Assembly: GCA_009103225.1 (NCBI GenBank)
Contig: RHPI01002532.1
Span: 1-46,746 of the forward strand
DNA from: Chlorokybus atmophyticus
Lineage: Eukaryota > Plantae > Mesostigma and Chlorokybus algae
DNA length: 46,746 nt
Reading direction: 5' to 3'
Position numbers and translations under genes: made by a program. Of the stretch, positions 10,161-46,746 are shown one piece after another (position 1 is the first letter of the stretch; each line of letters opens with the position of its first letter). Under the pieces are notes generated by a model. The model saw only the letters and a program-made list of their open reading frames with translations, made no database searches and was not told the origin of the DNA.

Positions 10161-12721
10161 CCACCCCCTGCAGCTGAGCACCAACGCCCTCGTGCGCCTT
10201 CAGCTAACTCAAACGCTCATCGTATAGTCCTCCTACACGTTGGACAGTACCATGCTCCGATGGAGATCTCCTTCAGTGGTGGACGAAGGCACTCTATGTG
10301 CCAACTTGCAACACACCTGTTGCATAGTAGCATGGTGTCCCAGCCCTCTGCTAGGCCACACCGCTCACAACGGTGGCCCACATTTAGTATTGCTAGAGCA
10401 GGTGGAACCACACTGTCATCCACGTTTAGCAAATGGCAAGGAGCGCAGCTCCTCATGTGCTCCTTGGTGGTCCCGGCATCAGCTCCCTCCAACAACAACA
10501 CACCATTATTGAGGAGCTTCACACAAAGGATGGTGCGACTCGCTCTCGTATCCAGCGTGTCCTTGGTCTTTCTCTGCAAGTAAGAAAAGTCATCTGGCTG
10601 AAACTTCTGCAGTCTTGGCTTGTAATAGCCACTCGTTACCCTAGCATAGCGCAACGTGTCGCGGTGTTGCGCCACTTGCAAGTTGCCAAGTGCGATTGGC
10701 ATGACATGCCGGAACAGCTCCGCACGCTTCACCATCTCCTTCTCCACACATTGGGATCCTTCGAGTCAAGCTTCTGCTCAACCTGTCTCCGGATTGATGC
10801 TGGCAATATGGGCTCCCTCCTATACAACATAAAGTAGGGGCTGTATGAGCTCAACGCAGCCTGCCGCGTCATGCGATAGCCTATCGCCAGCCATGGCAAC
10901 GCCAAGTCCCAGTCTCTCTTGTTGTGGTTGAGACAATACTTGCGAAGCCCCTTCTTCACCACATGTACCATTCTCTCAGCAAGCCCATCGGCCTGAGGAT
11001 GGTCACGGGAAGTCCTTTAATGGTCGTTGAAGGGTTGCGCCAACAAGTCATTGAACTGGCCACGAAACTCATTGCCTTGGTCAATGAGAACCTCAGCATA
11101 AGCACCAAATCTACCAAGGACTTGAACAAGGAAAGCCTCAGCCACAAGCTTGCTCTTCTTCGATAGCAGCGTCACGGCCTCAACCCACATTGAAAAGTGC
11201 TCTATCATCACGAGCACGTAACGATTGCCTCTCTTGCTAACTGGTAGGTCTCCTGCCAGATCTAGGGTTCACCGATATAATAGTCCTTGGATAGGCAAAG
11301 GGTGCAGCTTTGGGTGCTTGGCATTGAAGCTTGCCTTCACTGTATCGCACTCCACACAGCTCGCAACAACCCCTGCCACGGTAGACTGCATGCCAGCCCA
11401 ATATGCTGATTGCACAAGCCCAAGTGTCCTTTTGACACCAAAGTGGCCCATCTTCTCATGAAGCAGCTCCACAAGCGGCTTTCTCTTATGTGGTTGAGGC
11501 ACAATCCTCACACCATCCGGCATCAAGCGCACAAGGTGGTCTCCCTCCCACCGATAACGTTGCGCGCGTTGCCACAAGCGGTCTCGCGTCGCCGTGCTGC
11601 AACCAGCTTGAAACAGCCCGGTCTTGAGGTGATCAAGCACTTGCTCATCCCTCCATATGTCCTTTGAAGCCTCGGCTTCCTCCCCTTCAATGTCAATGAC
11701 CGTTGGGGCTGGTGCAGCCTCCAAAGGTGGCATCGCACCATTGTTGTTGCTCTCTTCAGCTGCGTTTGCGCGCAAAACCCAGCCACAAGCATGCCATAGT
11801 CATGCCTCGACTTACTCTCGTCCAACGATAAAGGATATGGGTTCCTACTCAGCCCATCCGCGTCCATGTTGTCAACACCAGCTCGGTGTTCAATCTCAAA
11901 CTCATACTCCTGCAGTATGAGAACCCACCTGACATGCTTCCCTGTGCGCTTATCATTGGTTATCAACCACTTCAAGGGGTGGTGGTTGGTGATGAGTGTC
12001 AAGGGACGGCCATAGAGAAACGATCCAATGTGAACAATGGCCCAAACCACTATCAGACACTCCCTCTCATAGGAGCTGTAGCTGGCCTCCGCGTTGTTGT
12101 TGCTTCGGCTACCGTATGCGACCACATACTCCTTGCCATCACCATCCTTCTAACACGAAACGGCTCCTATGCCCAAACGGCTCCAATCCGTGTGTAGGAT
12201 GAAGGGATAGTTGTAGTCCGCCCGTCTCAACACCGACGCGGTGCATAGCTTCTCCTTGAGAAGCTTAAAGGCACATTTGCACTCCTCCGACCAGCACCAG
12301 GCCTTGTCCTTCTTCAACAACTCATTCAAGGGCTTTGCAATCTTGCTATACCCCTCCACAAACCTTCGGTAGTAGTTCGCCAAGCCGAGAAACGCCCGTA
12401 GTTGGCTAATGTCTGTCGGTGCTGGCACTTGCACCAAGGCATCCACCTTTGCTTGTTGCACACGGACGCCATCCGGCACTATCTCAAGGCTAAGATAAGG
12501 GATGCGGTCAGCTCCGAACAAGCAGTTCTCCGGGTGACACCTCATGCCGCTCTCGCGCACGCGCTCGAACACGCGCTCTAAGTGCACGAGATGCTCCTCC
12601 ATCGTGTGGTTAAACACCAATATGTCATTAATGTAGCACCTTGCAAAGGGTAGACCACGAAGCACACGGTCCATCACACGCTAGAAATTCACAGGTGCAT
12701 TCTTCAAGCTGAGTGGCATGA
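10161..12721 (-). mobile_element. Decayed Ty3/gypsy pol: RT, RNase H, integrase and C-terminal PHD finger (REM1-like architecture)
   Basis: RT CYINDILVF (YxDD mutated) and LRAFLGLANYYRRFV; RNase H FILHTDWS and YSSYERECL; integrase HEKMGHFG..CVEC and GQFNDL..ERMVHVVK; PHD CERC..CNRC..WHIECLRPPL..WYCPTC at ~10226-10372. Several frameshifts. Confidence 0.9.
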
Positions 12722-12869
12722 TGTGACGGTGCTCGTGCCTTGTCACCTGTGAGTTGGTCCAATCAACATTCCTCTCACTAAGGCACGGTATTCACACCGA
12801 AACCTTGCCCCCTCTGCCAAGCACATACGCGCGCCGCGCCACTCGCGTACGCACGCGCATTGTCATGCC
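12722..12869 (-). mobile_element. LTR fragment of the same family as 34789-35459, interrupting the gypsy RT
   Basis: It starts TGTGACGGTGCTCGTGCCTTGTCACCTGTGAG and aligns closely over ~145 bp with 34789-34925. It sits right against the RT motif MPLSLKNAP. Confidence 0.8.
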
Positions 12870-20222: not shown

Positions 20223-20994
20223 CCCCCCCCCCCCCCCCCTTTTTGGTTAGCTGATGCCGCCAGCAGTGGTCCGCCTTTATTGGCCCACGCACGTGAGCAT
20301 TGACAGGCGCACCATGCACGGTGCAACTATCAGGGAGCTAAGCATGCGTCAGCGATGGTCCGCTTAATCATTATACTGCGGACCAACCTAGGACCATGCA
20401 TGGTTCAACAATCAGGGAGGACCGACCATGCATAGTCCGTATTTTTCCAAAATATCGGACCAGGAAGAGCTGTGAGTGGTCCGCAATCTTACGGACATGT
20501 GGACCTGTAAGTGCTTAGTTAGGTTTAGTTTGCGGACCATGGATGGTCCCCAATCAATATAGACATGTGGACCAATTAGAGCTTCATAAGGCGGCAGACC
20601 ATGTATGACGCGTGTTTGCTCATCCATAATGACCGATAAGCAAAGCGTGCACTAGTAACAGTCCGCCAAATTCCGAGTTGGACTAGCCACATGGATTTTA
20701 CTTATCGGAACATATATGGTCCGGCATTGTTGTAGTCCAGACCATGTATGGTCCTTACACCCATTGATAGTCGGACCGGCAGTATACCTAGTCCCGCTGT
20801 GGACCATGCATGGTCCGGACTTTCGTGGCCAATAGGACCGGTAATATATCTGATCCGGCTGCGCACCATACCTTATGCGTGACTGTGCGCCAGGATTCGC
20901 GGTCTCAAACGGACCAAGGACGATCCGTCCGCCGCGGACCAGGCGGTCCTAGACCGCGGGGGACGGACCATGCATGGTGCGCGGGGTCCAGGAA

Positions 20995-22075: not shown

Positions 22076-24143
22076 TGTCCACACCTAATGTTTAAGGGGT
22101 TCTCACCCTAAGTGTAACCAACCAATGAGTTTGCCAGAACCTCATAGATTATCTTATGTATCTTGTGCCATATCTTATGGCCACACCAACACACATCTTC
22201 AAGAGACAATTAGTGTTTTTACTAATTGTTCTCGAATAAACATAGAGCCTTCTTGGCTGTAGCTTAGCGGCAAGTGCTGAGCGCGTCGTCGCGCCCCTCG
22301 GCGTGACGCCTACCGCGCTAACAGTCACGCCGCGTGACTGCGACTGCCGCTCGCGCGTCTTGCCGCGTGACGCGAGACTCACATGAGCACTTGCGGTGCT
22401 CGCCGAGGTTTGCAGATATGCGGTACTTTGTGACTAAACAGTAATCACGTATTCCATGAGTACTTGACCACCACATTGTTGGCAACAAGCACATATACTT
22501 GTTGTAAACTTATTATATGTATGTTTGCACACTTGCATATACACCCATATGATTTTCCAAGCACTTTACTTGGAGTATAAACTACCAGCGCATTACAACG
22601 AGAGCGGCTATCAGGTTACGCCGATCAGCATGTAATGTTACACGCCTGAACATTCCCTTAAGATATAAGATATATGCTCTCTTGTACAGCATCAGTGCGC
22701 AACATGCCTTCTTTTAATCGGCACCGATGATCACGATAACGCCATAAATTCAACTGGGAGTATTACGAACCCCGATTGGGCATGAGAGCCTTGCACATGC
22801 ATAGGCAGCCATATAGATCCCCACACACGGATCTCATGATTGTTCAATAAGGAAATTGCCTCCTTGCATAAACCGACATGTATACCAAGGCGCCCCACCA
22901 GTGCTTTGCTTGCGCAATTCTTTAGTTTACTAATGTCTATCATCATAATTACTTGGATGTGTTATATAATATTTGTATATATAACCTTCAATGCGTGCAT
23001 GGTTGAATGGGTTGCTATACGGATGGATGTATACACGTGTGCGTGTGCGTTCGTGCATGCTCATGATCATGATCGTGCATAGTCCCTAATAAGATTACAT
23101 ATTTGTAGATAGCCAAGTATGGTACACGAAGTATAAATATATAAAACAACGTAACATCGCCAAGTTACGGATGTCGATTTTTTGTTATTTGTATTTAAAA
23201 AGTAACACTAGCATGCTTATAACGCAATTATTGCCTATGTGCTTGTCAATCAATAAAGCTGATTTGGTGCAAATACCGCCGCTTGCAATCGCCTAGTGGC
23301 CTATGGCACTCAAAGTCATTACAATGTGCACATTGTAATTACCATATGATGCCAGTATTTTGCTGCTTGTACGGTACATGCACTTGCAGTTTATTGGTTA
23401 GGGCGTCATGTTTGTTTAATTGAATATCATAAAGCATAGGGTTTAATCCATGGACGCATGTGTTTTTGTATAATCATGTTGAAAATGCCGCGGCCTCGTG
23501 TGCCGCATATCGGGCATGACCGATGCCGTTGGCTCAAGATGTATCAATTTACACTGCATTTGCAACCACTTCATTTGCCACAAATACATAATAATGTTCA
23601 TTATCCGCTGGCCCGTCTTTAGTCAAAATGCGACCACAAACCGGCCGAATTCAATATGATGCGACATCAAAGAAACATGGGACTACTCATACGAGATTCA
23701 TACCATACATAGTCCGGCTTCCATTACAGTTGGACCGTCCATGCTCCGTCACTTAGCAGGGGCAGCTTGAATGTTAGGCGGTGCAACCTGCAGGTCAAAG
23801 CCCTTCCGAAACCTCCGGGGGGCGGCAATGCCGTGGCAGCGTTGCATGTGATCACTACCGCTGTCCTCGCCGTCGCCATAACCATTGTCAACCTGATGCT
23901 GACTGTATTTGGCCTTTCACGAAGCGTAAGGCGCCCGCCGCCACCACCACCGCCGCCGCCATGCGAATTGCTCAGCGCTAATACCGCTAATTGGCAAATA
24001 TGCTTTTCTGACGGCAGCATCAAATTGCAAAACATGTTAGCTTGCACACCGCCTAACGCTAAAGGACCATAAATGGCCCGTGCCTTCGGACCAGCATTTT
24101 CCCCTGCTAAGTAAATGATGTACCATTGATAGGGACAGTCATT

Positions 24144-24330
24144 GACAGTGGGACCATGCATGGTCCAAAGTTCATATGAATGGTCCCACGTTTTTTCCGG
24201 GGTCGCACCATGTATAGCTTGGTCAATTTCGCTCGCGTCCGAACCAGGTACAGTCGGGGGAGCGGACTAGAGACCAAATTATGATATTACGCAAATTTAG
24301 GTATCATTGGTCCGGCCAGCGGACTATTAA
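24144..24330. repeat. Orphan DNA-transposon subterminal fragment with a GGACCATGCATGGTCC palindrome
   Basis: Perfect 16-bp palindrome at 24151-24166 plus several GGTCC/GGAC half-sites. Confidence 0.55.
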
Positions 24331-27330: not shown

Positions 27331-27721
27331 GGTGTTGGCCTGTGCAATGGACGGCACCAAGCTACCGCCAGTCGTCATTCTAAAGCGCAAGACTCTGCCT
27401 TCTGATTTGATCATACCAGAGGTGTGGTGGTGTGGGCGAATGAAGCGGGCTGGATGGATGAGGCACACAAGTGTGAGTGGGTCGAGGCGGTGATGCGCAA
27501 GCGGCCGAAGCGGGTTTTTGGCACTTGGGTGTTGGCCTGTGCAATGGACGGCACCAAGCTACCGCCAGTCGTCATTCTAAAGCGCAAGACTCTGCCTTCT
27601 GATTTGATCATACCAGAGGTGTGGTGGTGTGGGCGAATGAAGCGGGCTGGATGGATGAGGCACACAAGTGTGAGTGGGTCGAGGCGGTGATGCGCAAGCG
27701 GCCGAAGCGGGTTTTTGGCAC
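27331..27721. repeat. Tandem duplication of ~194 bp (period 197) inside the DDE exon
   Basis: 27331-27524 recurs at 27528-27721, separated by TTG. Confidence 0.93.
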
Positions 27722-34560: not shown

Positions 34561-34788
34561 ATACACAGCACACAAGTCATACAACACATGTGTGCACACT
34601 GAGCACAGTCTTCACACCGGAACCTTGCCTTCCCTCGCGCATACGCATGCGTTGAGCCCGCACACGCACATGAACACTACTACTTCTCACACCAAGCAAG
34701 AACGCAGCAGTGTGCCTTGGATCACGCCTCTCTCAAGCATACACCAGTATACTCCATCAGAGAGCAGAAAGCAAAGTTGGTTGTATTT

Positions 34789-35459
34789 GTGACGGTGCTC
34801 GTGCCTTGTCACCTGTGAGTTGGTCCAATCCACTACCCTCTCACCAAGACACGGTATTCACACCGGAACCTTGCCCCCTCTGCCAAGCACACACACGCGC
34901 CCCGCCACTCGCGTACGCACGCGCATGCGCTCGAAGCTACACACCGACTTGTGTAGCGCCTTGGATCGTCACACAAGCAAGCACACACCAGTGGCCACAC
35001 GCTAGCAACCCCTGCTAACCACCACCAAGCTTGCACACCAGAAACTAGGGAGCTAAAGGTTGTATTGCAAATTGTAGAATGTCACTTTTATACCTACCAG
35101 TCTGCACATGCTACTGTCTAGACGATTCTAGCGCTAGACGGAACTAGAAGCTAAGATATTCTTGCAGAATCTTGTAGTACACTTCTAGACCTTTCCAACG
35201 CACCAAAGATCTCCTAATTTGCTGCTCATATGGTCAAGTTATACTACTTGGCGCCAGGCCCTTCCAGAAATCTGGTCGAGCCCTTCTCGACTGGCCCTCC
35301 GTTTTCTGGCACCTTCCGGACTGGTCTTGGGGCCCCGGTCGATATCCGCGGCAGACTCATAACTCGCCGATATCCGCCACAAGTCATTAAAAACATGTAC
35401 CTTACAAATAAGGCCTAAAACGGCCATGAAAATCACAGAATTTGGCCTTGACTGTTACA
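34789..35459 (-). mobile_element. 3' LTR (671 bp) of the chromodomain gypsy
   Basis: The minus strand has PPT GGGGGGGGAGGAG then TGTAACAG at 35459. The other edge, TGTGACGG at 34789, is an imperfect inverted repeat of it. Minus-strand TATAAAA at 35086-35092. Confidence 0.8.
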
Positions 35460-37340
35460 CTCCTCCCCCCCCCGGTGAGCTTTGTCCTCGAAGCTCGCGA
35501 GGTTGTCGTCGAGCAAGATAGGCATGCACAACGTCTGGAGCATTAGTCAAGTGTGCCTCTGGCTCCCAGGATGCTTCATGCAACGGATAGCCCTTCCATT
35601 TCACTAAGAACTTGCGTACGCCATGCACAAACTTCTCACCAAGGATGTCTTCTACCTCCCACTCGGGTTCACCGTCCGTGCCAACTTCGGGGGGTGGCCT
35701 TTCTGGCGGTTGTCCTCGATATGCTTTCAGAAGGGAGACGTGAAAAACGGGGTGCACACGCATGGTGTCGGGTAGCTCCAACTTGTACGCCACGTCCGAG
35801 ATAACTTTGCTGACCTTAAATGGTCCCAACCAGCGTTCATTCAGCTTGCGAACTCCCGTACGCACCTGGACGTGCTTCGCGGAGAGTAACACAATGTTGC
35901 CTTCCTGAAACGTGAGGTGTCGGCGATGCGCGTCCGCGTACTGCTTCTGCCGATTTTGTGCCACCAATAACGCATCCCTAGCTACCTTGTTAATGTCCGC
36001 GCACTTTGTAAGGAAGTCATTAGCTGCCTCCACACGCACGTCATGTTGTCGCGGTGTCCATGCCGTCAACGGTGTCAATGGATGTTGCCCGTAGTTCATA
36101 AGGAAGGGAGTGACACCTGTGCTTGCATTGTGGTGGTTGTTGATCGCAAACTCAACCAACTCAAGCAGCTCCTCCCAATTGTCTTGTCGCGCGGTAACGT
36201 AGCAACGCAGCATGTCCTCGATCACACGGTTGGCCCGCTCCGTTTGCCCATCAGTTTGCGGGTGGAATGCCGTGCTAAACTTCAGTGTGGTACCCAGTGC
36301 ACTATGCAGCGCCTCCCAAAACTTACTTGTAAAGCGCGGGTCGCGATCACTCACAATGCTTCGTGGTAATCCATGAGAACGAAAAACATGCTTCACGAAC
36401 AAGCGTGCTGCCTCCGGTGCCGTGCAAGACTCACTACACGGTGCCAAGCGTACCATTTTGCTGGTTTTATCGACGAACACAAGTATAGCGTCGTACCCTT
36501 CTTTTGTCTTTGGTAGCCCCGTGATAAAGTCCATGGTAACTTGCTCCCACTTGAACAATGGCACAGGGAGAGGTTGCAGCAACCCACCTGGCTTTTGGTT
36601 GCTTGCCTTCACCCTTTGGCATGCGTCGCACAACGCCACGTAGTCGCGATGCATCTCTCGCCAGTAAAAACGCTGTTTTAAGCTGGCCAAAGTCCTTTCC
36701 AACCCTTGGTGACCAGCAATGGGCACGTCATAAGCTTCCTTCAGCAACTTCACACGGATATGCGCGACGTTGGGGATGTACAAGCGCCCATGGTGCCACA
36801 GCAGCCCGTCGCGCATTGACCAGTGCCCACTTGTGTCCGTAGCTGTATTTTTCAGCTCTTGCAACACTTTCATACCCTCCGTGTCTTCACGAAGCACTTG
36901 CCGAATCTGGTCGGTCCACTCGGGCTGCACTTGAGCGAGTGCCTCAATTGCATTAAGCCGGCTCAGCGCGTCAGCAACACCATTTGACGTACCGGGCTTG
37001 TACTTGATATCGAAGTCAAAAAGTTGAAAGAACTCAAGCCATCGAGCTTGTCTGCGACTCAGATGAGGTTGTGTTTGTAAGTACCTCAGTGGAGAGTGAT
37101 CCGTCTCAAACACGAACTTTTTGCCTTCTAGAAAACAACGCCATTGTCGTAGCGCAATGACTTGCGCTAAAAGTTCCTTCTCGTGCACGGGGTAATTCAG
37201 CTCCGCACCACTCATCTTCTTGCTGAAGAATGCTACTGGTTGAAGGCCGTTGCCATGGTGTTGCTGCAAAACAGCTCCTACGGCTGTGTCGGACGCGTCG
37301 CAAGCCAAAATAAATGTCTTTTCCATGTTGGGGTGAGCCA
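35455..37340 (-). mobile_element. Chromovirus (Ty3/gypsy) pol 3' half: RNase H, integrase and chromodomain, still open; RT side cut off
   Basis: FILACDAS and YPVHEKELLA; GHQG..CDAC; VTMDF / VSDRD / QTE triad; GPF motif; chromodomain WEVEDIL..FLVKWKGY...SWEPE. Confidence 0.95.
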
Positions 37341-37920
37341 CACGGAATTTTTTCCACGGACCAGCCCTGGTCCGCACGTACGGACCAGGGCCAAAACGCC
37401 CGGGCGGCTTGGGGTCCGGACCAGGGTCGCCCGCCTTGGTCTGCACGCGGGGACCAGGGCTGGTCCAAACAGTACGTAATTGTCCCACGGTCCCCCAAAA
37501 AACCGGGCCAGCCCTGGTTGCTGTTATCATGACGAGCGCAATGGGACCAATGCTGGTCTGCCATGCGTGTTGCTGCATGCACCAAGGATGGTCCGCTCTT
37601 GGCACAGTTCTGTCAAAAGCATCACCACTACTGGTCCCGAGTAGCAGGACCATCCTTGGTTCGCACTGTGGGACCATGCATGGTCTACTTGTATCTTAAT
37701 GTCTAGCCCAGATGGTCTGCAAGGATGGTCCCGACTTGTGGGACCAACCATGGCTCTGCTGGCGGGACCATGCCTGGTCCACACCCAACCATTTCTTTGT
37801 ACCAGCCGAATCTCACTGCATTGGTCCATGCTTGCATCCAGGGACCAGCATTGGTGCACGACACCCGCTGACATCCTGCACCAATGCTGGTCTATGACCC
37901 ATGCACCAGCAATTCACGGT
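37341..37920. mobile_element. Terminus and subterminal palindrome array of a CACTA-like DNA transposon inserted in the gypsy pol
   Basis: It starts CACGG exactly where pol homology (..AHPNMEK) stops. GGACCA-N4-TGGTC(C/T) occurs at 37358, 37451, 37544, 37671 and 37765, with many half-sites. Confidence 0.7.
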
Positions 37921-38579
37921 AACCCATTCTATTATATAGTGCGTGTCTGGCAATCAGCGAGACCTGCAAAGTGTCAAACATCTATGCTAACTACAGCAGT
38001 GTTCTCATAGCTACTAAGATCACCAGCGCTCATAGCTTGCCTATGATGAGACTGAGCGCATGCTGCGCACACCATGTGATCTCGGCACTGCACGCACACG
38101 TTCCTTCTGTTCCATACTCTGCTCCATACTTGCAAATGTAGACGGCCTTTCAGATGAACGAGTGCACGCCGCGTGCACCAACAACAGATTGTCGTAGACA
38201 CTGCGCACGCACACTGCATTTGAGCAACACCGCAACTGTAAAACACAATGTACATTTCTTAAAGAATAGACACGTAACAGTAGCAACATGCAACAGTTGC
38301 AACTTTGCACATCTCTGATACCTATCATTTGGAGGATGCCATCCTGCTTGGCTCCCATCGCCCCATGAAGCGGAACCTCTTGGGCTCAGGCGTTTCACTT
38401 TCATCCGGCATGCCTGCATGCACAATGAGTGGCTAATGTGTACAATCACATACACAGAGACCAGACTGCTCGTACATGGCACTATTAGCTTATAGCTTAC
38501 CAGCTTATGAGCATACCCTATAGACTGCATTGTGACACTGTGCATTGGTCACAGCTACCAAGCCTATGAGCGGTCTATA

Positions 38580-40913
38580 AGCTCAAAACATACCTGGCCG
38601 TTTCCTCGTGTTTATCCAGCCCAGCTGACCACCCTGCGTTGGGTCTTCGCCCAGCCACTTCTTCTTCATTGCAAACTGCACAACCGCTTGCATGATACGC
38701 TGTGTTGGAATGCTGTCCATCCGGGCCTGGTCTCGAAAGGGAAGAGGTGCCACGCTCTCCATCAGCGCCACCTGCTTCTTCCGCCAGAATTCCCATTGCC
38801 GGCCAACCTGCGCCCTAGTAGGTGTTTGCTCAGTGCCACAGCACACAGCCGCCAGCATCTCCAGCTTCCTCATCATCCACTGAAACCTCGTGGTCCTGCA
38901 TGGGCACATCATCAGCACAACCAGAAAGCACTTGAAACAAGGAATTACGCGCACATAGCTGACAAACCTGATCATCTTGCTGCGCATTGGTGTTCAGTTC
39001 TTCAAGTACTCTCGCCTGGCATTCCCCCATCCGGACGTGCCTATTGAAGCTGCATTCACCGTTTTCACAGACGCAGGTGCCCATCTGGCTCATGAACATA
39101 AGTGGCCACTCAACCGTCACGCTCTGCACTCCATCAGTTGTCAGTGTCATAGGCGGTTCACATGTGCACACTTTAGCCAACTACACGCGACGCACGTCTC
39201 GCACTTGATGACATGCAGTGACAAAAGCATAGACTGTGCGTGACTGACAATCACCAACTTACCTCTAGCTCGGCGCGTGTGTAATGATCCGGTGTCTTGC
39301 CATGCATGAGCCTTTGCGACCTGATAGGTATGAACGGCCGCACGCTGTCGTCCTCCACGCAAAACACTGGCAGCCAATTAATGATCTGCACGCTGTATGT
39401 GCGGCAGGGCTCATCCACCTCGGCAATCTCAAGGATGGTGGCAATGGCCACGGGCACACATGGGTCTTCACGACTTGAGGATTGCATATCGTCAAAGACT
39501 TTGTCTCGGTCGTAATCGTCTGCATGTCTGCACCTCATGAACAGGCATCGTGTTAGATAACACAACACAACAGCTGTACATTCAGCTTGCTTCACTTCTA
39601 GTGGAGTTGTCACAGTTCAGGGTTGCAATCATACATGCGCGCACACAGTCCTTACCTGAATTTGAGCCAAGTAGCCCGCAGCACGTCATCTGGAAGGGGC
39701 CCGTCGCTCAAGGGGCACCACAGAACGACTGTCTGCGAAGGGCTGTAATCGTCAGGGCTGAAAACTCTGCCCCACCCTACAGACCGGCGACGAGCAGCTG
39801 TGCCGTGTTTGGCAGTTCGCTCTGCTTCTCGAGCATGCGCACGGAGCTGGACCCGCTGCTCCCTGGACTGTCCTTGGCGTTCACCTCGTTCTTCTTTAAC
39901 GCCCCTCCGATAAGTCCATTGGCGTTGTATGAAATATGCCCGGATGTGCTCTGCCAAGCAAAAGTTATAAGGATGTCCACATGTCCAAAAAGCTGCTTTG
40001 GTCTCATAAGGTGGCACCGTCCAAGACACTCTACGACTTATGCATTTCCATAGCTGAGACCGTAGGACTCATAGGCACTGTCCAGTGTCTACGACTTATG
40101 CACTCCATTGCTGTGACCTAAAGACTCATAGGCACTGTCCAGTGTCTGCTTATGCAATCCATTGCTTCTAGATGCTCATAGGCACTGTTGTCAGCGTCTA
40201 CGACGTATGCGTTCCATTGCTGAGACCTAAGGACTCATAGGCACTGTCCAGTGTCTACGACTTATGCCATCCATTGCTGAGACCTAAGGACTCATAGGCA
40301 CTGTCCAGTGTTCCAGCTTGACAAACAGTAACCGACCAACAGTGGCACCACTAACCAGTAGTAAAAACAGCTGGATATACATGAAGACTAGCTGAATTCA
40401 GCTGAACAGCAAGCCATCAAGTAACGCGACAACTTGGCAAGTAGCGTGATATCAACTGACTTGCAACAGTGGCAACACTGATCAGCAGCAACAACAGCTT
40501 GAGGGCTAGCAAAGCTTGCTATATGCATGAATACGGGCTAGTTTCACCTGAACAGTTACCGATCTACACACAAGGCATTCAGAGCAAACCTTCACAGAAA
40601 ACAACTGACCTCTGGACATGCGGAGCTCTATGCCTTCCCCAAACACTAGAGGCTCCAGCTCCGGCTCTAACTCCTCACATAACCTCTCCAGCTTGGCAAT
40701 GCTGGCCTGCGCTGCATGATCCTTGCTCCGCTTGTCGAAATTCACCTCCTTCCAACCTGGACCAGGGATTTGCTCCCACTGTTTGAGCTTGTTGGTGATT
40801 TTGTCCATGTTTCGCACATGGGTGGGGTGCACAGAGGAAAAGTTGTCCCTCAGGAACCTGTCCCCAGTTTTCTGGCCGTTGTTGCCACAGTTGAACACTT
40901 GGCTGGCAGAAGG
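38580..40913 (-). pseudogene. Multi-exon gene of unknown function, probably disrupted; one part is weakly BAH-like
   Basis: Exon-like blocks ~40913-40589, 40030-39656, 39525-39263 and ~39230-38970 have GT donors. At least one stop and an unresolved junction. Confidence 0.45.
40031..40311. repeat. Minisatellite of ~5 x 57-58 bp in an intron
   Basis: Unit CTACGACTTATGC..TCCATTGCTGAGACCTAAGGACTCATAGGCACTGTCCAGTGT at 40031, 40089, ~40146, 40198 and 40255. Confidence 0.9.
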
Positions 40914-41330
40914 CACTGCGGTCACCATTGTTACACTATGCACAAAGCACCTAAGCTTCCAGGTGACAAAAGGCTCACACAGCAGTCTATAGCACGCGAC
41001 TTATTGCAGCTGCGATAACCAGTGCCGAAGTCGGACTGCGCACAACGCACAACACATGCGCACAACGCACGCGCGAGCGAACAAAACTTCCAAATGACGG
41101 AACCTGACAACAAACACTTCCAAATGAATCAACTTCCAGTGCCTGTGACCTAGGGTTCGTCGGAGCGGCCTATGCGGTCGCCTGTCACGCCGCCGGCAGC
41201 CTGATGTTTGGTGTGCCTAAGGTAGTTCTGGCGGTGCTGGCAGAGGTGTGGTAGCGGAGTGCTGGCTTGTGTTGCACAAGAGTGTTATCCAGTGCAAGTT
41301 GTTGCAGAGATCAGCAAGCTGAGAAACACC

Positions 41331-44300
41331 ATGGATGATGACATCCCTACCGTGTCGGCGGCATCGTCGACTTCAGAGGAGACTCGGAGGCAGCCTTCAC
41401 ACCAGCGGACTTTCTATTGGCACTGTCCCTACTGCAGAACAAATGTGAAGGCGGGCCATTTTAAGTCCAACGGGCTTCCAGAAACCACACACACCAAGAC
41501 TGCAAAGATCGCGCAGCACCTGCACATCAGATATTGCAGGTACATGCGCAGACGAACCAACCAGGGCGGCAGGGAGACAGCAGATGAGCTGAAGGGACGG
41601 ATGGGGGATTCTCTCTCCAAAGCAGTACGGGTGCGTGTGATGTTGTGAAAGTGCGTTTGTTCTTATGGACTTGTAGACTCATAGACGTTGTATGCATGCT
41701 AGTGAACTGATATTTGGGCAAAAGACTATGCAACAAAATTGACTTACGTGAAGCATATGTTGGCGTGCAGGCCCTGAATCATCCCAAACAAAGCAGAGTT
41801 TCCGTCGACAACGTGCGGAGAGTCACCGAGGAGTATCTGCGAAAGCATCACACTGGAGCCTTTGCATTTGTAAGCACATGCAGCATGCAACTGTTAGCGA
41901 AAAAAATGCCATTACAACGCCTTGGTTGCTAACCTTGTCGCTTGTTACACAGAACAAGAAATTCTGGGATGACGCTGAGCACGATTACAACAACATCCCC
42001 CTCTACCCGAAGGAGCAAACCACACCAAAGCGGACAAAGCGGCAGCGGCAGCAAGGTTCAGGTGTTGCCGCTGCAGGTTCAGCGGCAGAAGCGTCAACAG
42101 CGGAGGAAACCGAGTTCGACTTCGCTGCGACAGAGACGAGGGAGCCAGAGGAGCTTGAGGAACAACTTGAGGATGTGATGCAGGAGGGGTCGGAGGAGTC
42201 AGCGCAGAAGGCTACGGAGGAGGTGGCCGAATTGGAGCAGTCTGAGGAGGAAGAGGTGGTGCCACCTGCAAAGAAACCGAGGCATGCCAGCTGGCGAGGC
42301 ATGAAAATAGGAACGTCATCGGCAGCCGGCTCTCCCAGAACTCCCCAAACACCTGCGAGTATCCATGCGAATACTCATAGACTGCTCTGATCAGGACATG
42401 TGCGCGTTGTCTTATGTCATAGGCCGAGACAGTCTGTGAGTCAATAAATGTATATGATATCCTTACCATTGTCTTACACACAGGGTGGCAGGGTGAACCA
42501 ACCTGTAGCCGATGCCCCACAGGCTACTAAGCCAAGGCAACACCGATCAGCGCAGGCCCGTGAACTGGCTGTGACCAATGCTGCAGCCGAGGTCAATCGA
42601 TTCACCAAGACGGGGATGAACGCTGTGGAGTTGCCACCGCCATCAGAAGAACATCTGCGGGTGCGTCTTTGTTCGCATAATATCATGCATGCTGATCACA
42701 TGCCATGGGCGCCATGCTGCATGCACTGCTTAGTTGCAGCCTATGACAATTCACACCAACTTACCGTCACTTGTTGTTTGCAGAGTGACAGAGAGCTTCC
42801 CAACCGCAAGCGCATACATAGAGCGACCGGTGACCCATGGCAGCTGTGGACGAATGGTCCAATTCCCATAGGCGAACTCTTCCATTTTGCTGGCAAAGAG
42901 TTCGTCATCAAGCCTTCCAATATCCCTGGCGCAGGGCTCGGCTTGTTCACCTGCCAGCCTATTAAGAAGGGTGACCGCATCATGGTCTTTGACGGCAAGT
43001 GGTACTCCTACCGGGAGATGCAGAAGACATTCCCTCAGAAGGAGCACCTGCACCACCAGCGATACCACCTGCAGGTCATCAGGGACGTGCCACGCCGCCA
43101 GAGCCCTGTCATCGATGGCCACCCTCGATATGGGAACATAGCTGGCTTCCTCAACTCCAGCCGCGATACGCAGTACAAACCCAACTGCCACATCATGGAC
43201 TCCGTTGATGAGGCTGCGGTGCAGGCAGCTGAGGTTAGGAGTCAGAGTGACATCGCCGCCGGGGAAGAGCTGCTCATGGAATACGATCCCTTCCCTCCAC
43301 CTCCAGACGAGCAACCTACAGACCATGTGAGTATATGCAGCCTGTGGCTCGTGCCTATAGACATCACTTGCTCTGCCAGACACTGTCTCCTGCTGTTATA
43401 GACTGCATCTGTGAGAGCTGTGCGGTCTATGACCTTGTCATTCAGCATTGCAAACAATGTGCTGATCACCGTCTTACCTCAGGTCATGGAGTACTTTTTC
43501 GAGGCGGCCAGAGAAAAGTTTATCAAGGAGGCAACAGAGATGGCAGCTCGCCATGGCGTCGCGCTCGAAGACGGCGCGTACCTCGCCGCTTGCACTGCAC
43601 CGCGTCAAGCTGGTGAATCTTTAGGCGCCTACACATGGAGGGTGCTGAAACGACCACAAGTCGCCCGAAATCAAAGACAGAATGTAAGTGTTGAGAACGC
43701 TTCGTCAGTGCATGGTCGTACATGTCATTGTGCATTCATAGACTGCACTTGTGTCACCAGAACGACACAGTCAATCACACTGTCAGAGAGGCGTCTGTAC
43801 GCCTTTTAAAAGGGATATTTGACTCAGCTGAAAGCAAGTGCGCTGAGCTTACACGCGTGCTAGATAGACTATTCCTGCTGTTAAGACAGATAGACTCCAG
43901 AATAGAACAAGAGAAAGAACAGAGGGTATGTTTGTGTTATTAAACGTAAATGAGTTGTGTGTAATTCGTGTTCTAACTGGTGGTTATGATTCGCAGAAAC
44001 TTACCAAGGAAGTGTTCCGTAAGGCAGAGACTACAATTCGCAAAGGCCTTCAAGAGATTGCCGCTCAGGGCGCCATGGTGACACGGGCTGCAAATCAGCA
44101 CAGGCTGAAGGAGCAGGATTATCAGTCAAGAATCGAGAAGACCATTTTGTCCATGGTGCGCAATGGTCTGAATGAAAGCAGGCGACATTGGTTGACTGAG
44201 GAGCAGATAGCTGCCGTGCGCACCAATGTTCAAAACGCCCAAGATACGACTGCACAGTGGCAGGCTGAGCAAAAGCAATTGCAGCAACGCAACAAGGCGG

Positions 44301-46746
44301 AGTGGGAGACACGCCGGCTACGCATCAACGCCATTGCTAATCGGAGGAAACAGAAGCGAGAAGTTTGGCTGGAAGAGCAGATGAAGACCATCCATTTTCA
44401 GGATCCAGGATGGGCTGAGAATTACAAGTCCTTGCGCGCATACCTCATCAACAAGTGGGAGTGCAACCATCCTTGGCCATCCATTCCTGCTGCAGCTCCT
44501 GGTCCGACTCCTTCTAGTGCTGCTTCTGGTGCTGCGGCTACCTCTAGCAATCCTTCTCAAGCTGCTGTTGATGCTGCTCTTGCCTCTGCTGCTGCTGCTG
44601 CTGCTGCACTTGCAGCATTGGGAGGGGTTTCGGGGCGACCTTCAGTTCCTCTAGTGTTTCCGGACAGGCCACCACAAGGAAGCGCAGAGAAGGATGCCAT
44701 AGACCGTGGCCATCAAACTGCTGGAGGGACTCCAGGAGGTGCTGCTGAGGGTCAGCATGTCAGCGGTAATGAACCTGCTGGAGGTGATGAACCTGCTGGA
44801 GGTCGTGATGAACCTGCTGGAGGTGATCATCATGAACCTGCTGGAGGTGATCATCATGGAGACGGCAGTGGTGATGAACCCAGCGATCATGAAAGCAGCG
44901 ATGATGACAGCAACGGTGACGGTGACGACGATGCTCGTAAGAAGTTGGAAGACGGTATCGCTGCTGCACGTTCAGGAGTCGCCAATGCCAGCAACATAGC
45001 CAAGTTGGTTGAAGGCTTTGTCCAGAACCTCCAACAGCAAGTGCCCCAACTTCAGGTAACCCTTGGCCAAAGTCAGCATTAGTCAGTCTATGGCTACTTG
45101 TGCGTCACAGGCCGCACTGTCCATTTCGGTCTATGACCCCGCTGTTTCGTGTTTGTGCTCTAACTTGGTGTTTCGATGCAGCAACACCTAGAAGAGGCGT
45201 CTACAAGCACCCAGGCCGTTGCATCCGCCAGCGCTGATGTCAAGCGCATCCATGCAGCGGAGTTATCAGCCGCTGTTGAAGCAGCAGCCAAGGCTAGCCA
45301 ACAGCATGCAGAGTTGCTGCAACAGGAGAAGAAGGCCAGAGAGGAGGCCGGGGGGCGCATACAGAAGCTGGAGGTGGCTCTTGCAAAGCAGGAGAAGGAA
45401 AGAGAGGAGGCCGTGGGGCGCATACCACAGCTGCAGGCCGCTCTCGATGCAGCCAATGCTGAGCGACAAAGGCTGCAACAGCAGGATCAGGCCAGAGCGG
45501 AAGACAGCCAGCGCGTACAACAGCTACAACAAACTTTGCAAGAGCTGGGAGAAATCAATGCTCGGCGTTCAGAGCTGGCGAGGGAAGAAGCTGAACGTCT
45601 GTGCGGTGAACGCCCTGCCTTGAAAGAGCACCTCACCCGCTGCAAGCGCATTGAAGATGACGTCAAGGCCGCCTTTAACAGGATCAGCGAGTTGGATGAA
45701 GAGTTGGTGCTGGCCTTGCAGCGTGAGGATGCAGCGCAAGAGTTGGTTGCCACCACTGCTGACAGGGACCGCCTACGACAGCAGTTGGCGACAGCCGAGG
45801 AGGCCAGGAAAAAGCAGCAGAACCTTCTTGACCAGCTTCAGCAGCAGCCCTCCGCGCAAGCACAAAAGCTCCAAGCAGAGGTTGACGCCCTTAATGCAAG
45901 ACTTCAGCGTCAGCAGTCACACCAAGACTCCATTCGGAAGCAGCAGGAAGACACGCTTCAGCACCAGTTGAGGTGGACCAATGCGGAGAGGCAACGCTTG
46001 GAAACAGAGAATGTGAGCCTACGGCAGGCGAGGAGCAGCTTCAAAGGATCAGCAGCAGCACGCTTGGAGGAGATCCAGAGCCTGTAGGAGCGCCTGCGCA
46101 AAGCCGAGGAGGTCTCGCAACAAGCGCGTGACGCTGCGCGCAAAGCCGAGGAGGCCTCTCAACTCCAAATCCAGCTTCAGCAAATGGCCTCCCTCCAGCG
46201 GCAGGCGCGTGAGGAGGCGGACCGCCTACAAAAGGAAAATGCAGAACTGAGTGAGCGCCTGCGCCAAGCTGAGGAGGTCAGGAAGAAGCAGCAGGAGAGC
46301 GGCGGCCAGCAGCAGCAGGAGGCGTCCACTCAGCAGAAGGCGCTTGAGGAGGAGGACCGTCTACGACAGGACAATGCAAGCCTGACTGAGCGGCTGCGCC
46401 AAAGCGAGGAGGCCAGGAAGAAGCTGGAGGAGAGCAGCGGCCAGCAGCAGCAGCAGGAGTCCTCCGCTCAGCAGGTGCGTGAAGAGGCGGACCGCCTACG
46501 AGAGGAGAACTTGCAACTGAGTGAGCGCCTGCGCCAAGCCGAGGAGGCCAGGAAGAAGCTGCAGGCGAGCAGCCCACGGCAGGACAATGAGAGCCTGCGC
46601 GAGCGCCTGCGCACAGGCGAGGAGGCCAGGAGGAAGCTCCGTGCAGCAGTGCAGTCTCGCGATGAAAAACTCGGGAAGGCCTCTCAACAGGCGCAAGAGG
46701 CTGGGCGCAAGCTGCAAACAGAGGTTGAATCTTTGACTGCTGAGAA
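41331..46746 (+). CDS. 9-exon gene: BED-like Zn finger, acidic region, SET domain, long coiled coil; 1283 aa to an in-frame TAG, frame stays open to the window end
   Basis: Exons 41331-41630, 41771-41869, 41953-42354 (needs a GC donor, gcgagt), 42484-42660, 42784-43326, 43483-43683, 43761-43925, 43997-45055 and 45182 onward join in frame. WHCPYC..AQHLHIRYC; SET motifs PSNIPGAGLGLF, GNIAGFLNSS and GEELLMEY at ~42900-43285. Confidence 0.8.
44770..44856 (+). repeat. Coding repeat GAACCTGCTGGAGGT (EPAGG) x4
   Basis: Direct reading in exon 8. Confidence 0.85.
46210..46570 (+). repeat. Three ~135-bp coding repeats (E.DRL..EN..L.ERLRQ.EE.RKK)
   Basis: Copies begin near 46211, 46350 and 46482, all in the coiled-coil frame. 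Confidence 0.8.

Follow-up and report, generated by a model that had tools for sequence, protein, structure and literature searches.

A probable CACTA-type DNA transposon of Chlorokybus atmophyticus, inserted in a chromovirus pol gene and carrying a SET-domain and coiled-coil gene

The stretch analyzed here (the window) is the whole 46,746 nucleotides (nt) of Chlorokybus atmophyticus contig RHPI01002532.1, of which the last 9.4 kb are the element portion. Positions 37341–46746 probably make up the left-hand ~9.4 kb of a multi-copy DNA transposon, for which CACTA/EnSpm is the likeliest assignment; it carries a spliced SET/coiled-coil passenger gene and was inserted in the pol gene of a gypsy/chromovirus element. 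The passenger gene starts about 4 kb inside the terminus and encodes a finger-like N-terminus, acidic stretches and stretches resembling nuclear localization signals (NLS), a SET domain and a coiled coil.

The interrupted host element is a Ty3/gypsy chromovirus, in which ribonuclease H (RNase H), integrase and chromodomain are present and whose intact copies continue into the reverse transcriptase (RT). The minus-strand open reading frame (ORF) at 35455–37677 has 740 codons and matches, from residue 113 on, the Pfam families RT_RNaseH, Integrase_H2C2, rve, SH3_Tf2-1 and Chromo; no RT domain was found in it by Pfam. Its first ~110 residues are a read-through into the repeat of the element, and the pol fragment proper, with RNase H, integrase, SH3 and chromodomain, occupies 35455–37340 on the minus strand, as delimited by Pfam, the sequencing contigs described below and the relatives. 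In full-length pol relatives from the protein collection, the named ones being from Closterium and a fungus, RVT_1 lies upstream of the RNase H and integrase domains. The gypsy pol is cut at 37340/37341, exactly between the RT and RNase H parts, and RT-like sequence is not resumed anywhere in 37341–46746 by tblastn. The pol fragment lacks the RT because the transposon was inserted. An earlier note on this DNA had placed a transposon end at the RT/RNase H boundary of a gypsy pol and had remarked that pol is absent from the following 9.4 kb; both statements are borne out, the former by contigs that carry an uninterrupted pol past 37340.

The exact position of the end was obtained from Logan contigs of two public runs (X1 and X2), of which 68 and 50, respectively, aligned to 36900–42899 at 90–100% identity. 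Each run contains a contig that tracks the gypsy element to 37340 and then diverges from the window sequence. On the minus strand the diverging sequence reads ...KKALTEAPV directly before LAHPNMEK, which is the uninterrupted pol, and the empty site reads ...GAGCCA joined to GGACTGG. In other contigs the match to the window begins at 37341 (at 37339 in one group) and is preceded by unrelated flanks; the element end CACGGAATTTTTTCC is joined to at least two other flanks in the run contigs, making three different left flanks in all. The presence of contigs with an intact gypsy pol together with contigs with other flanks means that the element starts at 37341 and occupies three or more sites. Position 37341 is therefore the true terminus of a multi-copy element, and the left terminus CACGGAATTTTTTCC (37341–37355, plus strand) is the point at which the contigs with three different left flanks converge. 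The terminus 15-mer has a single exact copy in the window, and one match with 3 mismatches at 37111 is within chance. Neither the element nor its terminus was found a second time in the window; the inverted end (...GGAAAAAATTCCGTG), the reverse complement of the terminus, likewise has no copy in the window, which ends inside the element at 46746.

The element begins with CACGG, and thus has the CAC start of CACTA/EnSpm-type ends, although its agreement with the CACTA end consensus stops after CAC, GG being the next two bases. Directly behind the terminus lies an array of GGACCA-N4-TGGTCC palindromes (37356–37900). With at most 1 mismatch, this palindrome has 16 matches in the window, where 0.19 would be expected; 8 of the 16 lie at 37358–37857, and 19 GGACC/GGTCC half-sites occur in 37356–37900, about tenfold the density of the window. 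The half-sites stand in both orientations, as in the subterminal repeat arrays of CACTA/EnSpm elements. Hence the CAC-initiated and palindrome-rich end described in the earlier note is confirmed, its boundary now being fixed by the empty-site and other-flank contigs. A contig variant omits 90 nt between two of the repeats (joint 37666>37757), which is as expected from repeat-number variation among copies. Further palindrome clusters are seen at 20391–20980 and 24064–24166, mostly of the form GGACCATGCATGGTCC; the palindrome aside, they show no similarity to the element at 37341. The first of these clusters comes after an assembly gap, and no large ORFs lie between the two.

The passenger gene, as modeled, has seven exons from the ATG at 41331 (ACACCATGG), each a multiple of three in length, with all introns in phase 0, and extends beyond the window end. 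The donors are GTGCGT, GTAAGC, GCGAGT, GTGAGT, GTAAGT and GTAACC, and all six introns end in CAG. All exons are on the plus strand. Exon 1 (41331–41630) holds the ATG in its ACACCATGG context and a Cys/His finger-like motif (CPYC...HLHIRYC). Exon 2 (41771–41869) has 33 codons and is placed by the GT-AG, phase-0 model. It is followed by exon 3 (41953–42354), supported by the model and the contigs, in which basic NLS-like stretches (PKRTKRQRQ, AKKPR) flank an acidic tract. Exon 4 (42484–43326) encodes a Cys/His-rich pre-SET stretch and then the SET domain (about 42840–43320), as recognized by Pfam, phmmer, AlphaFold2 and Foldseek. Exon 5 (43483–43683) is predicted by the gene model. Exon 6 (43997–45055) is composed, by the model and its repeats, of a helical charged part and an Ala/Gly/Asp-rich low-complexity part with repeats of 18–24 nt. 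Exon 7 (45182–46746 and beyond the window end) encodes the coiled coil in repeats of 135 nt (45 amino acids), as judged by the heptad test and the repeats.

Between the subterminal array and the gene lies an interior without detectable coding domain (37901–41330, plus strand; Pfam and Tandem Repeats Finder), which contains a 57-bp tandem repeat in five copies (40030–40311) and copies of ATAGACYGC. None of the ten ORFs of 37.9–41.0 kb gave a meaningful Pfam match, and Rfam and tRNA scans gave no matches. The 9-mer ATAGACTGC has five exact copies in the window, all within the element; with one mismatch allowed, 11 of its 18 matches are inside the element, which makes up only 20% of the window. 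The 5′ interior and introns 3–6 contain copies of ATAGAC(T/C)GC (38520–45140), frequently paired in inverted orientation at a distance of 24–50 nt, and the introns of the SET gene can be aligned on a common bipartite motif. The halves of the intron pairs do pair as RNA hairpins, yet with a stability not above that of shuffled sequences (fold z −1.8 to +1.0). It is possible that the intron motifs are protein-binding sites or reflect a common origin of the introns. At 40983–40990, contigs of both runs are 15 bases longer than the window (AGTCTATAGCACGAG, or its equivalent in shifted form), and this difference is one in the copy number of an ATAGACT motif unit between copies.

A gene next to a transposon end is not necessarily its cargo, and a deletion could have brought a host gene to abut the terminus. 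Such an origin would be in keeping with a right end that lies out of view and with the 3.4 kb of featureless DNA between the terminus array and the gene. The contig depth of X1 and X2, a quantity not equal to copy number, is 19.8 and 12.7 over the terminus stretch, 20.6–25.2 and 17 over the gene stretch, and 72–192 over the gypsy element. Dozens of extra contigs, 90–99% identical, cover the element stretch, and the same diverged kind is present on terminus and gene. The terminus and the gene are equal in contig depth, which argues for a gene with the copy number of the terminus, and hence for a gene that is cargo. In addition to this agreement of depth and of diverged contigs in two runs, the element-specific ATAGACTGC connects the 5′ interior with the introns, and no orthologue of the gene exists among 1.8 billion representatives. 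A host gene merely abutting the transposon end is thus very improbable.

The nature of exon 4 was established by several lines of evidence, with protein searches run exon by exon and not on one joined protein. Pfam assigns it to SET (PF00856) with 42.1 bits against a cut-off of 22.4 (E 1.3e-10). Searched by phmmer against 1.84 billion representatives, the exon gave 54 matches at E≤1e-3, all inside the SET core, with 7.5e-9 as the best; the identity to these matches is at most 37%, a few short fragment matches excepted. A word-indexed search, which covers only proteins of 175–555 amino acids, found no close homologues of the exon. A profile of the query and 31 matches recognizes EZH2, MLL1, ASH1L and NSD at 1e-23 to 1e-18 (EZH2 3.6e-23). 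AlphaFold2 with the alignment of relatives modeled the exon with a predicted local distance difference test score (pLDDT) of 79.4 and a predicted template modeling score (pTM) of 0.76, as against a pLDDT of 35.7 for the single-sequence prediction. The top Foldseek matches of the model in the PDB are MLL1, SETD8, NSD1, ASH1L and EZH2 (E about 1e-8, probability 1.00), and a viral library yielded SET proteins of giant viruses, including Phaeovirus. The SET domain named in the earlier note is accordingly upheld by a Pfam score above cut-off, a confident AlphaFold2 model and Foldseek matches to SET folds.

The motifs of the domain are partly canonical. The GxG motif (GAGLGLF), the invariant Asn residues and the C-terminal Tyr (GEELLMEY, ELxxxY) align to the motifs of EZH2. 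At the NH(S/C)xxPN motif, however, the site reads FLNSSRDTQYKPN, with NSS for NHS, so that the His is missing; (E)YxG has Phe in place of its Tyr, and no post-SET Cys cluster is present in the gene model. Changing the NHS His reportedly abolishes the activity of SUV39H1. A catalytically dead SET, serving as a scaffold in a protein that acts as a coiled-coil adaptor or lysine-tail binder, would account for these three departures. On the other hand, GxG, the invariant Asn residues and the Tyr of ELxxxY are retained, and the relatives are informative. Eight relatives have the N-flank of the query (LW..G.PIP..F.F.G..Y), and in the resulting alignment of nine sequences from different organisms GNxAG(Y/F)xNS is invariant, including the Ser at the His site, while Tyr and Phe alternate at (E)YxG. 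Since the NSS motif is invariant in this alignment, it is a maintained trait of the subfamily and not a decay of this copy. PR-type SET enzymes such as PRDM9 are active without the NHS His, and EZH2 Y641F is said to be active as well. A dead scaffold is accordingly a possibility to be taken seriously, albeit rather unlikely. Judged from its motifs and model, exon 4 is a divergent SET domain of the lysine-methyltransferase type, with methyl transfer as a prediction only. The caution of the earlier note, that NSS and Phe make activity uncertain, holds in that both substitutions are present, and loses some of its weight with the invariant Ser and the alternating Tyr/Phe.

The subfamily with the NSS motif is small, with 17 matches in the profile search, mostly on short metagenome or Logan contigs; the members that carry an organism name come from Diphasiastrum, a lycophyte, and Riccia sorocarpa, a liverwort. 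One of the closest SET relatives, on the metagenome contig Ga0590115_0004573 (10001–10498), lies in a giant-virus-like context with EsV_1_7_cys, DUF5901, Methyltransf_24, JmjC and Cas12f1-like TnpB genes. This neighborhood, and the SETs of Phaeovirus and other giant viruses among the fold matches, could be taken to mean that the gene is integrated giant-virus DNA rather than transposon cargo. The gene, however, has six introns, a transposon terminus lies within 4 kb, no viral hallmark gene is found in the window, and the relatives are only about 30–37% identical; a viral origin is hardly to be expected. In Riccia sorocarpa (CM100799.1, 10188–13230), an ORF that matches Transposase_21, the family of CACTA TnpD (1.3e-23), follows 1.3 kb after the subfamily SET gene, and 3 kb further a 1166-codon ORF with RING and Peptidase_C48 lies in its own element bounded by inverted repeats. 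The locus is a nest of elements, in which the inverted repeats bound other nested elements and none encloses the SET gene; therefore the link between SET and Transposase_21 is only suggestive. With that reservation, the Riccia neighborhood suggests a connection of the subfamily to CACTA elements. The SET locus of Diphasiastrum showed no transposase.

Several points weigh against the reading of 37341–46746 as a CACTA/EnSpm element with a gene as cargo. No transposase was found in 37341–46746 by Pfam. With neither a transposase, nor a right terminus, nor a target-site duplication up to 46746, the assignment to a superfamily rests on the CAC start, the subterminal repeats and outside leads. The region was found in no RNA run, and the exon borders are those of a predicted gene model. 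Compared with the run contigs, the exons differ in 9 codons, and all 9 differences are non-synonymous, giving no sign of constraint on this copy. To these are added the limit on contig depth and the absence of the canonical His mentioned above. The same cargo could be carried by a cut-and-paste element from a different lineage, within the CMC clade or close to it (Plavaka-like, Mutator-like or unclassified). Such an element would agree with an end that shares only CAC with the CACTA consensus before GG, and with the lack of a visible transposase; moreover, related accessory genes move among Plavaka, Mutator and Zisupton in red algae (10.1101/2025.02.11.637652). Nevertheless, CAC..GTG termini with subterminal repeat arrays are the pattern of EnSpm (PMC12730594), and it is a Transposase_21 fragment that adjoins the subfamily SET in Riccia. 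Another lineage is thus given little probability, and the CACTA/EnSpm assignment is preferred.

The copy at 37341–46746 is decaying. An in-frame TAG (46085–46087, plus strand) stands in the coiled-coil exon where the sister repeats have a Ser codon (SL*ERLR against LSERLR). The donor of exon 3 at 42355 is GC here and GT in the contigs of X1 and X2 (42356 C>T), and is thus a weakened donor private to this copy. The nonsense codon, the weakened donor and the exclusively non-synonymous differences fit a copy drifting after insertion. The gene had been called cleanly spliced in the earlier note; the seven phase-0 exons with GT-AG borders agree with this as a model, whereas the GC donor and the TAG do not.

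For the N-terminus, a BED finger had been proposed. The pattern is present in exon 1 as C32-x2-C35 ... H63-x-H65-x3-C69, with BED-like spacing. Pfam, however, gave no zf-BED match on exon 1 or on the whole ORF, even with E up to 10, and the nearest ESM Atlas clusters of exon 1 are unrelated small groups of generic zinc fingers with scores of at most 0.82. The BED identity, with neither profile nor language-model support, was therefore rejected, and the motif is a candidate zinc finger of no recognized type. The long coiled coil of the earlier note, by contrast, is substantiated. Exons 6 and 7 are rich in E/Q/R/A/L with about 1% Pro, and the heptad periodicity of 45182–46084 exceeds that of 500 of 500 shuffles. 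The coiled-coil exon has no match among PDB sequences, and the helical part of exon 6 gave no usable ESM Atlas match.

A function can be proposed for the protein of intact copies. It would enter the nucleus, pair up via its coiled coil, and either methylate lysines or use its SET fold to bind lysine tails, its target being chromatin or the transposition machinery; this action may tune the silencing or the activity of the element itself. The subterminal palindromes are likely landing sites of one or more DNA-binding proteins of the element, which could be the transposase or the SET/coiled-coil protein. A more specific version, in which the GGACCA-N4-TGGTCC palindromes and the ATAGAC(Y)GC intron pairs recruit the SET/coiled-coil protein to the element that encodes it, where it writes a lysine-methyl mark, is speculative and considered improbable.

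The region of insertion is transposon-rich and probably subtelomeric. It is crowded with transposon debris, including two gypsy-type pol genes, assembly gaps and microsatellites. The window opens with 13.7 perfect copies of ACCCTA (1–82), a TTAGGG-type telomere repeat, which places the region in a subtelomere or at a scaffold end. The second gypsy-type pol is fragmented and lies at 10217–12677 on the minus strand, with RVT_1, RNase H and Integrase_H2C2; in its last ORF a PHD finger (PF00628, 9.4e-8) takes the place that the chromodomain has in the other gypsy. A stretch of 139 bp downstream of the interrupted pol (34788–34926) is 93% identical to 12722–12860 of the second gypsy-like element. 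A perfect tandem duplication of 197 bp (2.0 copies, 100% identity) at 27331–27721 may be a recent duplication or an assembly artefact.

SET genes have been found in transposons before. They are reported in HarbingerS and MuDR elements of Phytophthora (Kojima & Jurka, Repbase Reports 2014, cited in PMC12730594), and a preprint on the red alga Bostrychia describes Helitrons that captured SET genes (bioRxiv 10.1101/2025.02.11.637652). The same preprint describes in red-algal Plavaka elements, of the EnSpm superfamily, a three-gene cassette in which PAG2 combines an N6-adenine methylase with SET, located beside inverted-repeat arrays; its authors propose a self-directed modification of chromatin or DNA. 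The claim of the earlier note that the architecture had not been described has therefore to be withdrawn as far as SET genes in HarbingerS, MuDR, Helitron and Plavaka are on record. A full-text search of the literature on CACTA or EnSpm with SET domains gave no description of the architecture of finger, NLS, SET and coiled coil. Thus the element shares the idea of a SET cargo with known transposons, and not their architecture of cargo.

A close parallel is that of Plavaka and PAG2, which also are a giant cut-and-paste element of the CACTA superfamily and a SET accessory gene near inverted-repeat arrays. They differ, in a comparison made by description, in that PAG2 has the methylase while here SET is followed by a long coiled coil; no N6-adenine DNA methylase domain was found in any exon or ORF of 37341–46746, the visible part of the gene. 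The hosts also differ, being red algae in one case and Chlorokybus atmophyticus in the other. HarbingerS and MuDR are similar as DNA transposons with an acquired SET histone methyltransferase gene, and differ in belonging to other superfamilies and in that no coiled-coil fusion is described for them in the text consulted. Compared with MLL1, SETD8, NSD1, ASH1L, EZH2 and the giant-virus SETs, the domain has the SET fold, GxG, the invariant Asn residues and the C-terminal Tyr in common, whereas it has NSS for NHS and lacks the post-SET zinc cluster. What the copy at 37341–46746 contributes is an exactly placed left boundary, an empty site and signs of decay; it is no new kind of system. To our knowledge, only few transposons carry potential chromatin-rewriting enzymes, and there is no demonstrated case in which a transposon turns a SET domain on itself.

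The family would offer a workable system for asking whether transposons directly manipulate histone marks. It is young and multi-copy, resides in an early-branching alga of the green lineage, has clear termini and two element-specific motif arrays, and its SET subfamily is common to the element and to land-plant genomes. Accessory proteins that bind repeated motifs of their element and alter its epigenetic state are known from TnpA of maize En/Spm and VANC of Arabidopsis VANDAL elements. The subterminal arrays found here resemble the arrays of TnpA sites, the binding in our case being putative. Neither TnpA nor VANC has a SET domain, and neither is an enzyme. If it is true that the SET protein recruits itself, it would be a sequence-specific, self-directed writer of chromatin, and as such an enzymatic counterpart of VANDAL VANC or En/Spm TnpA.

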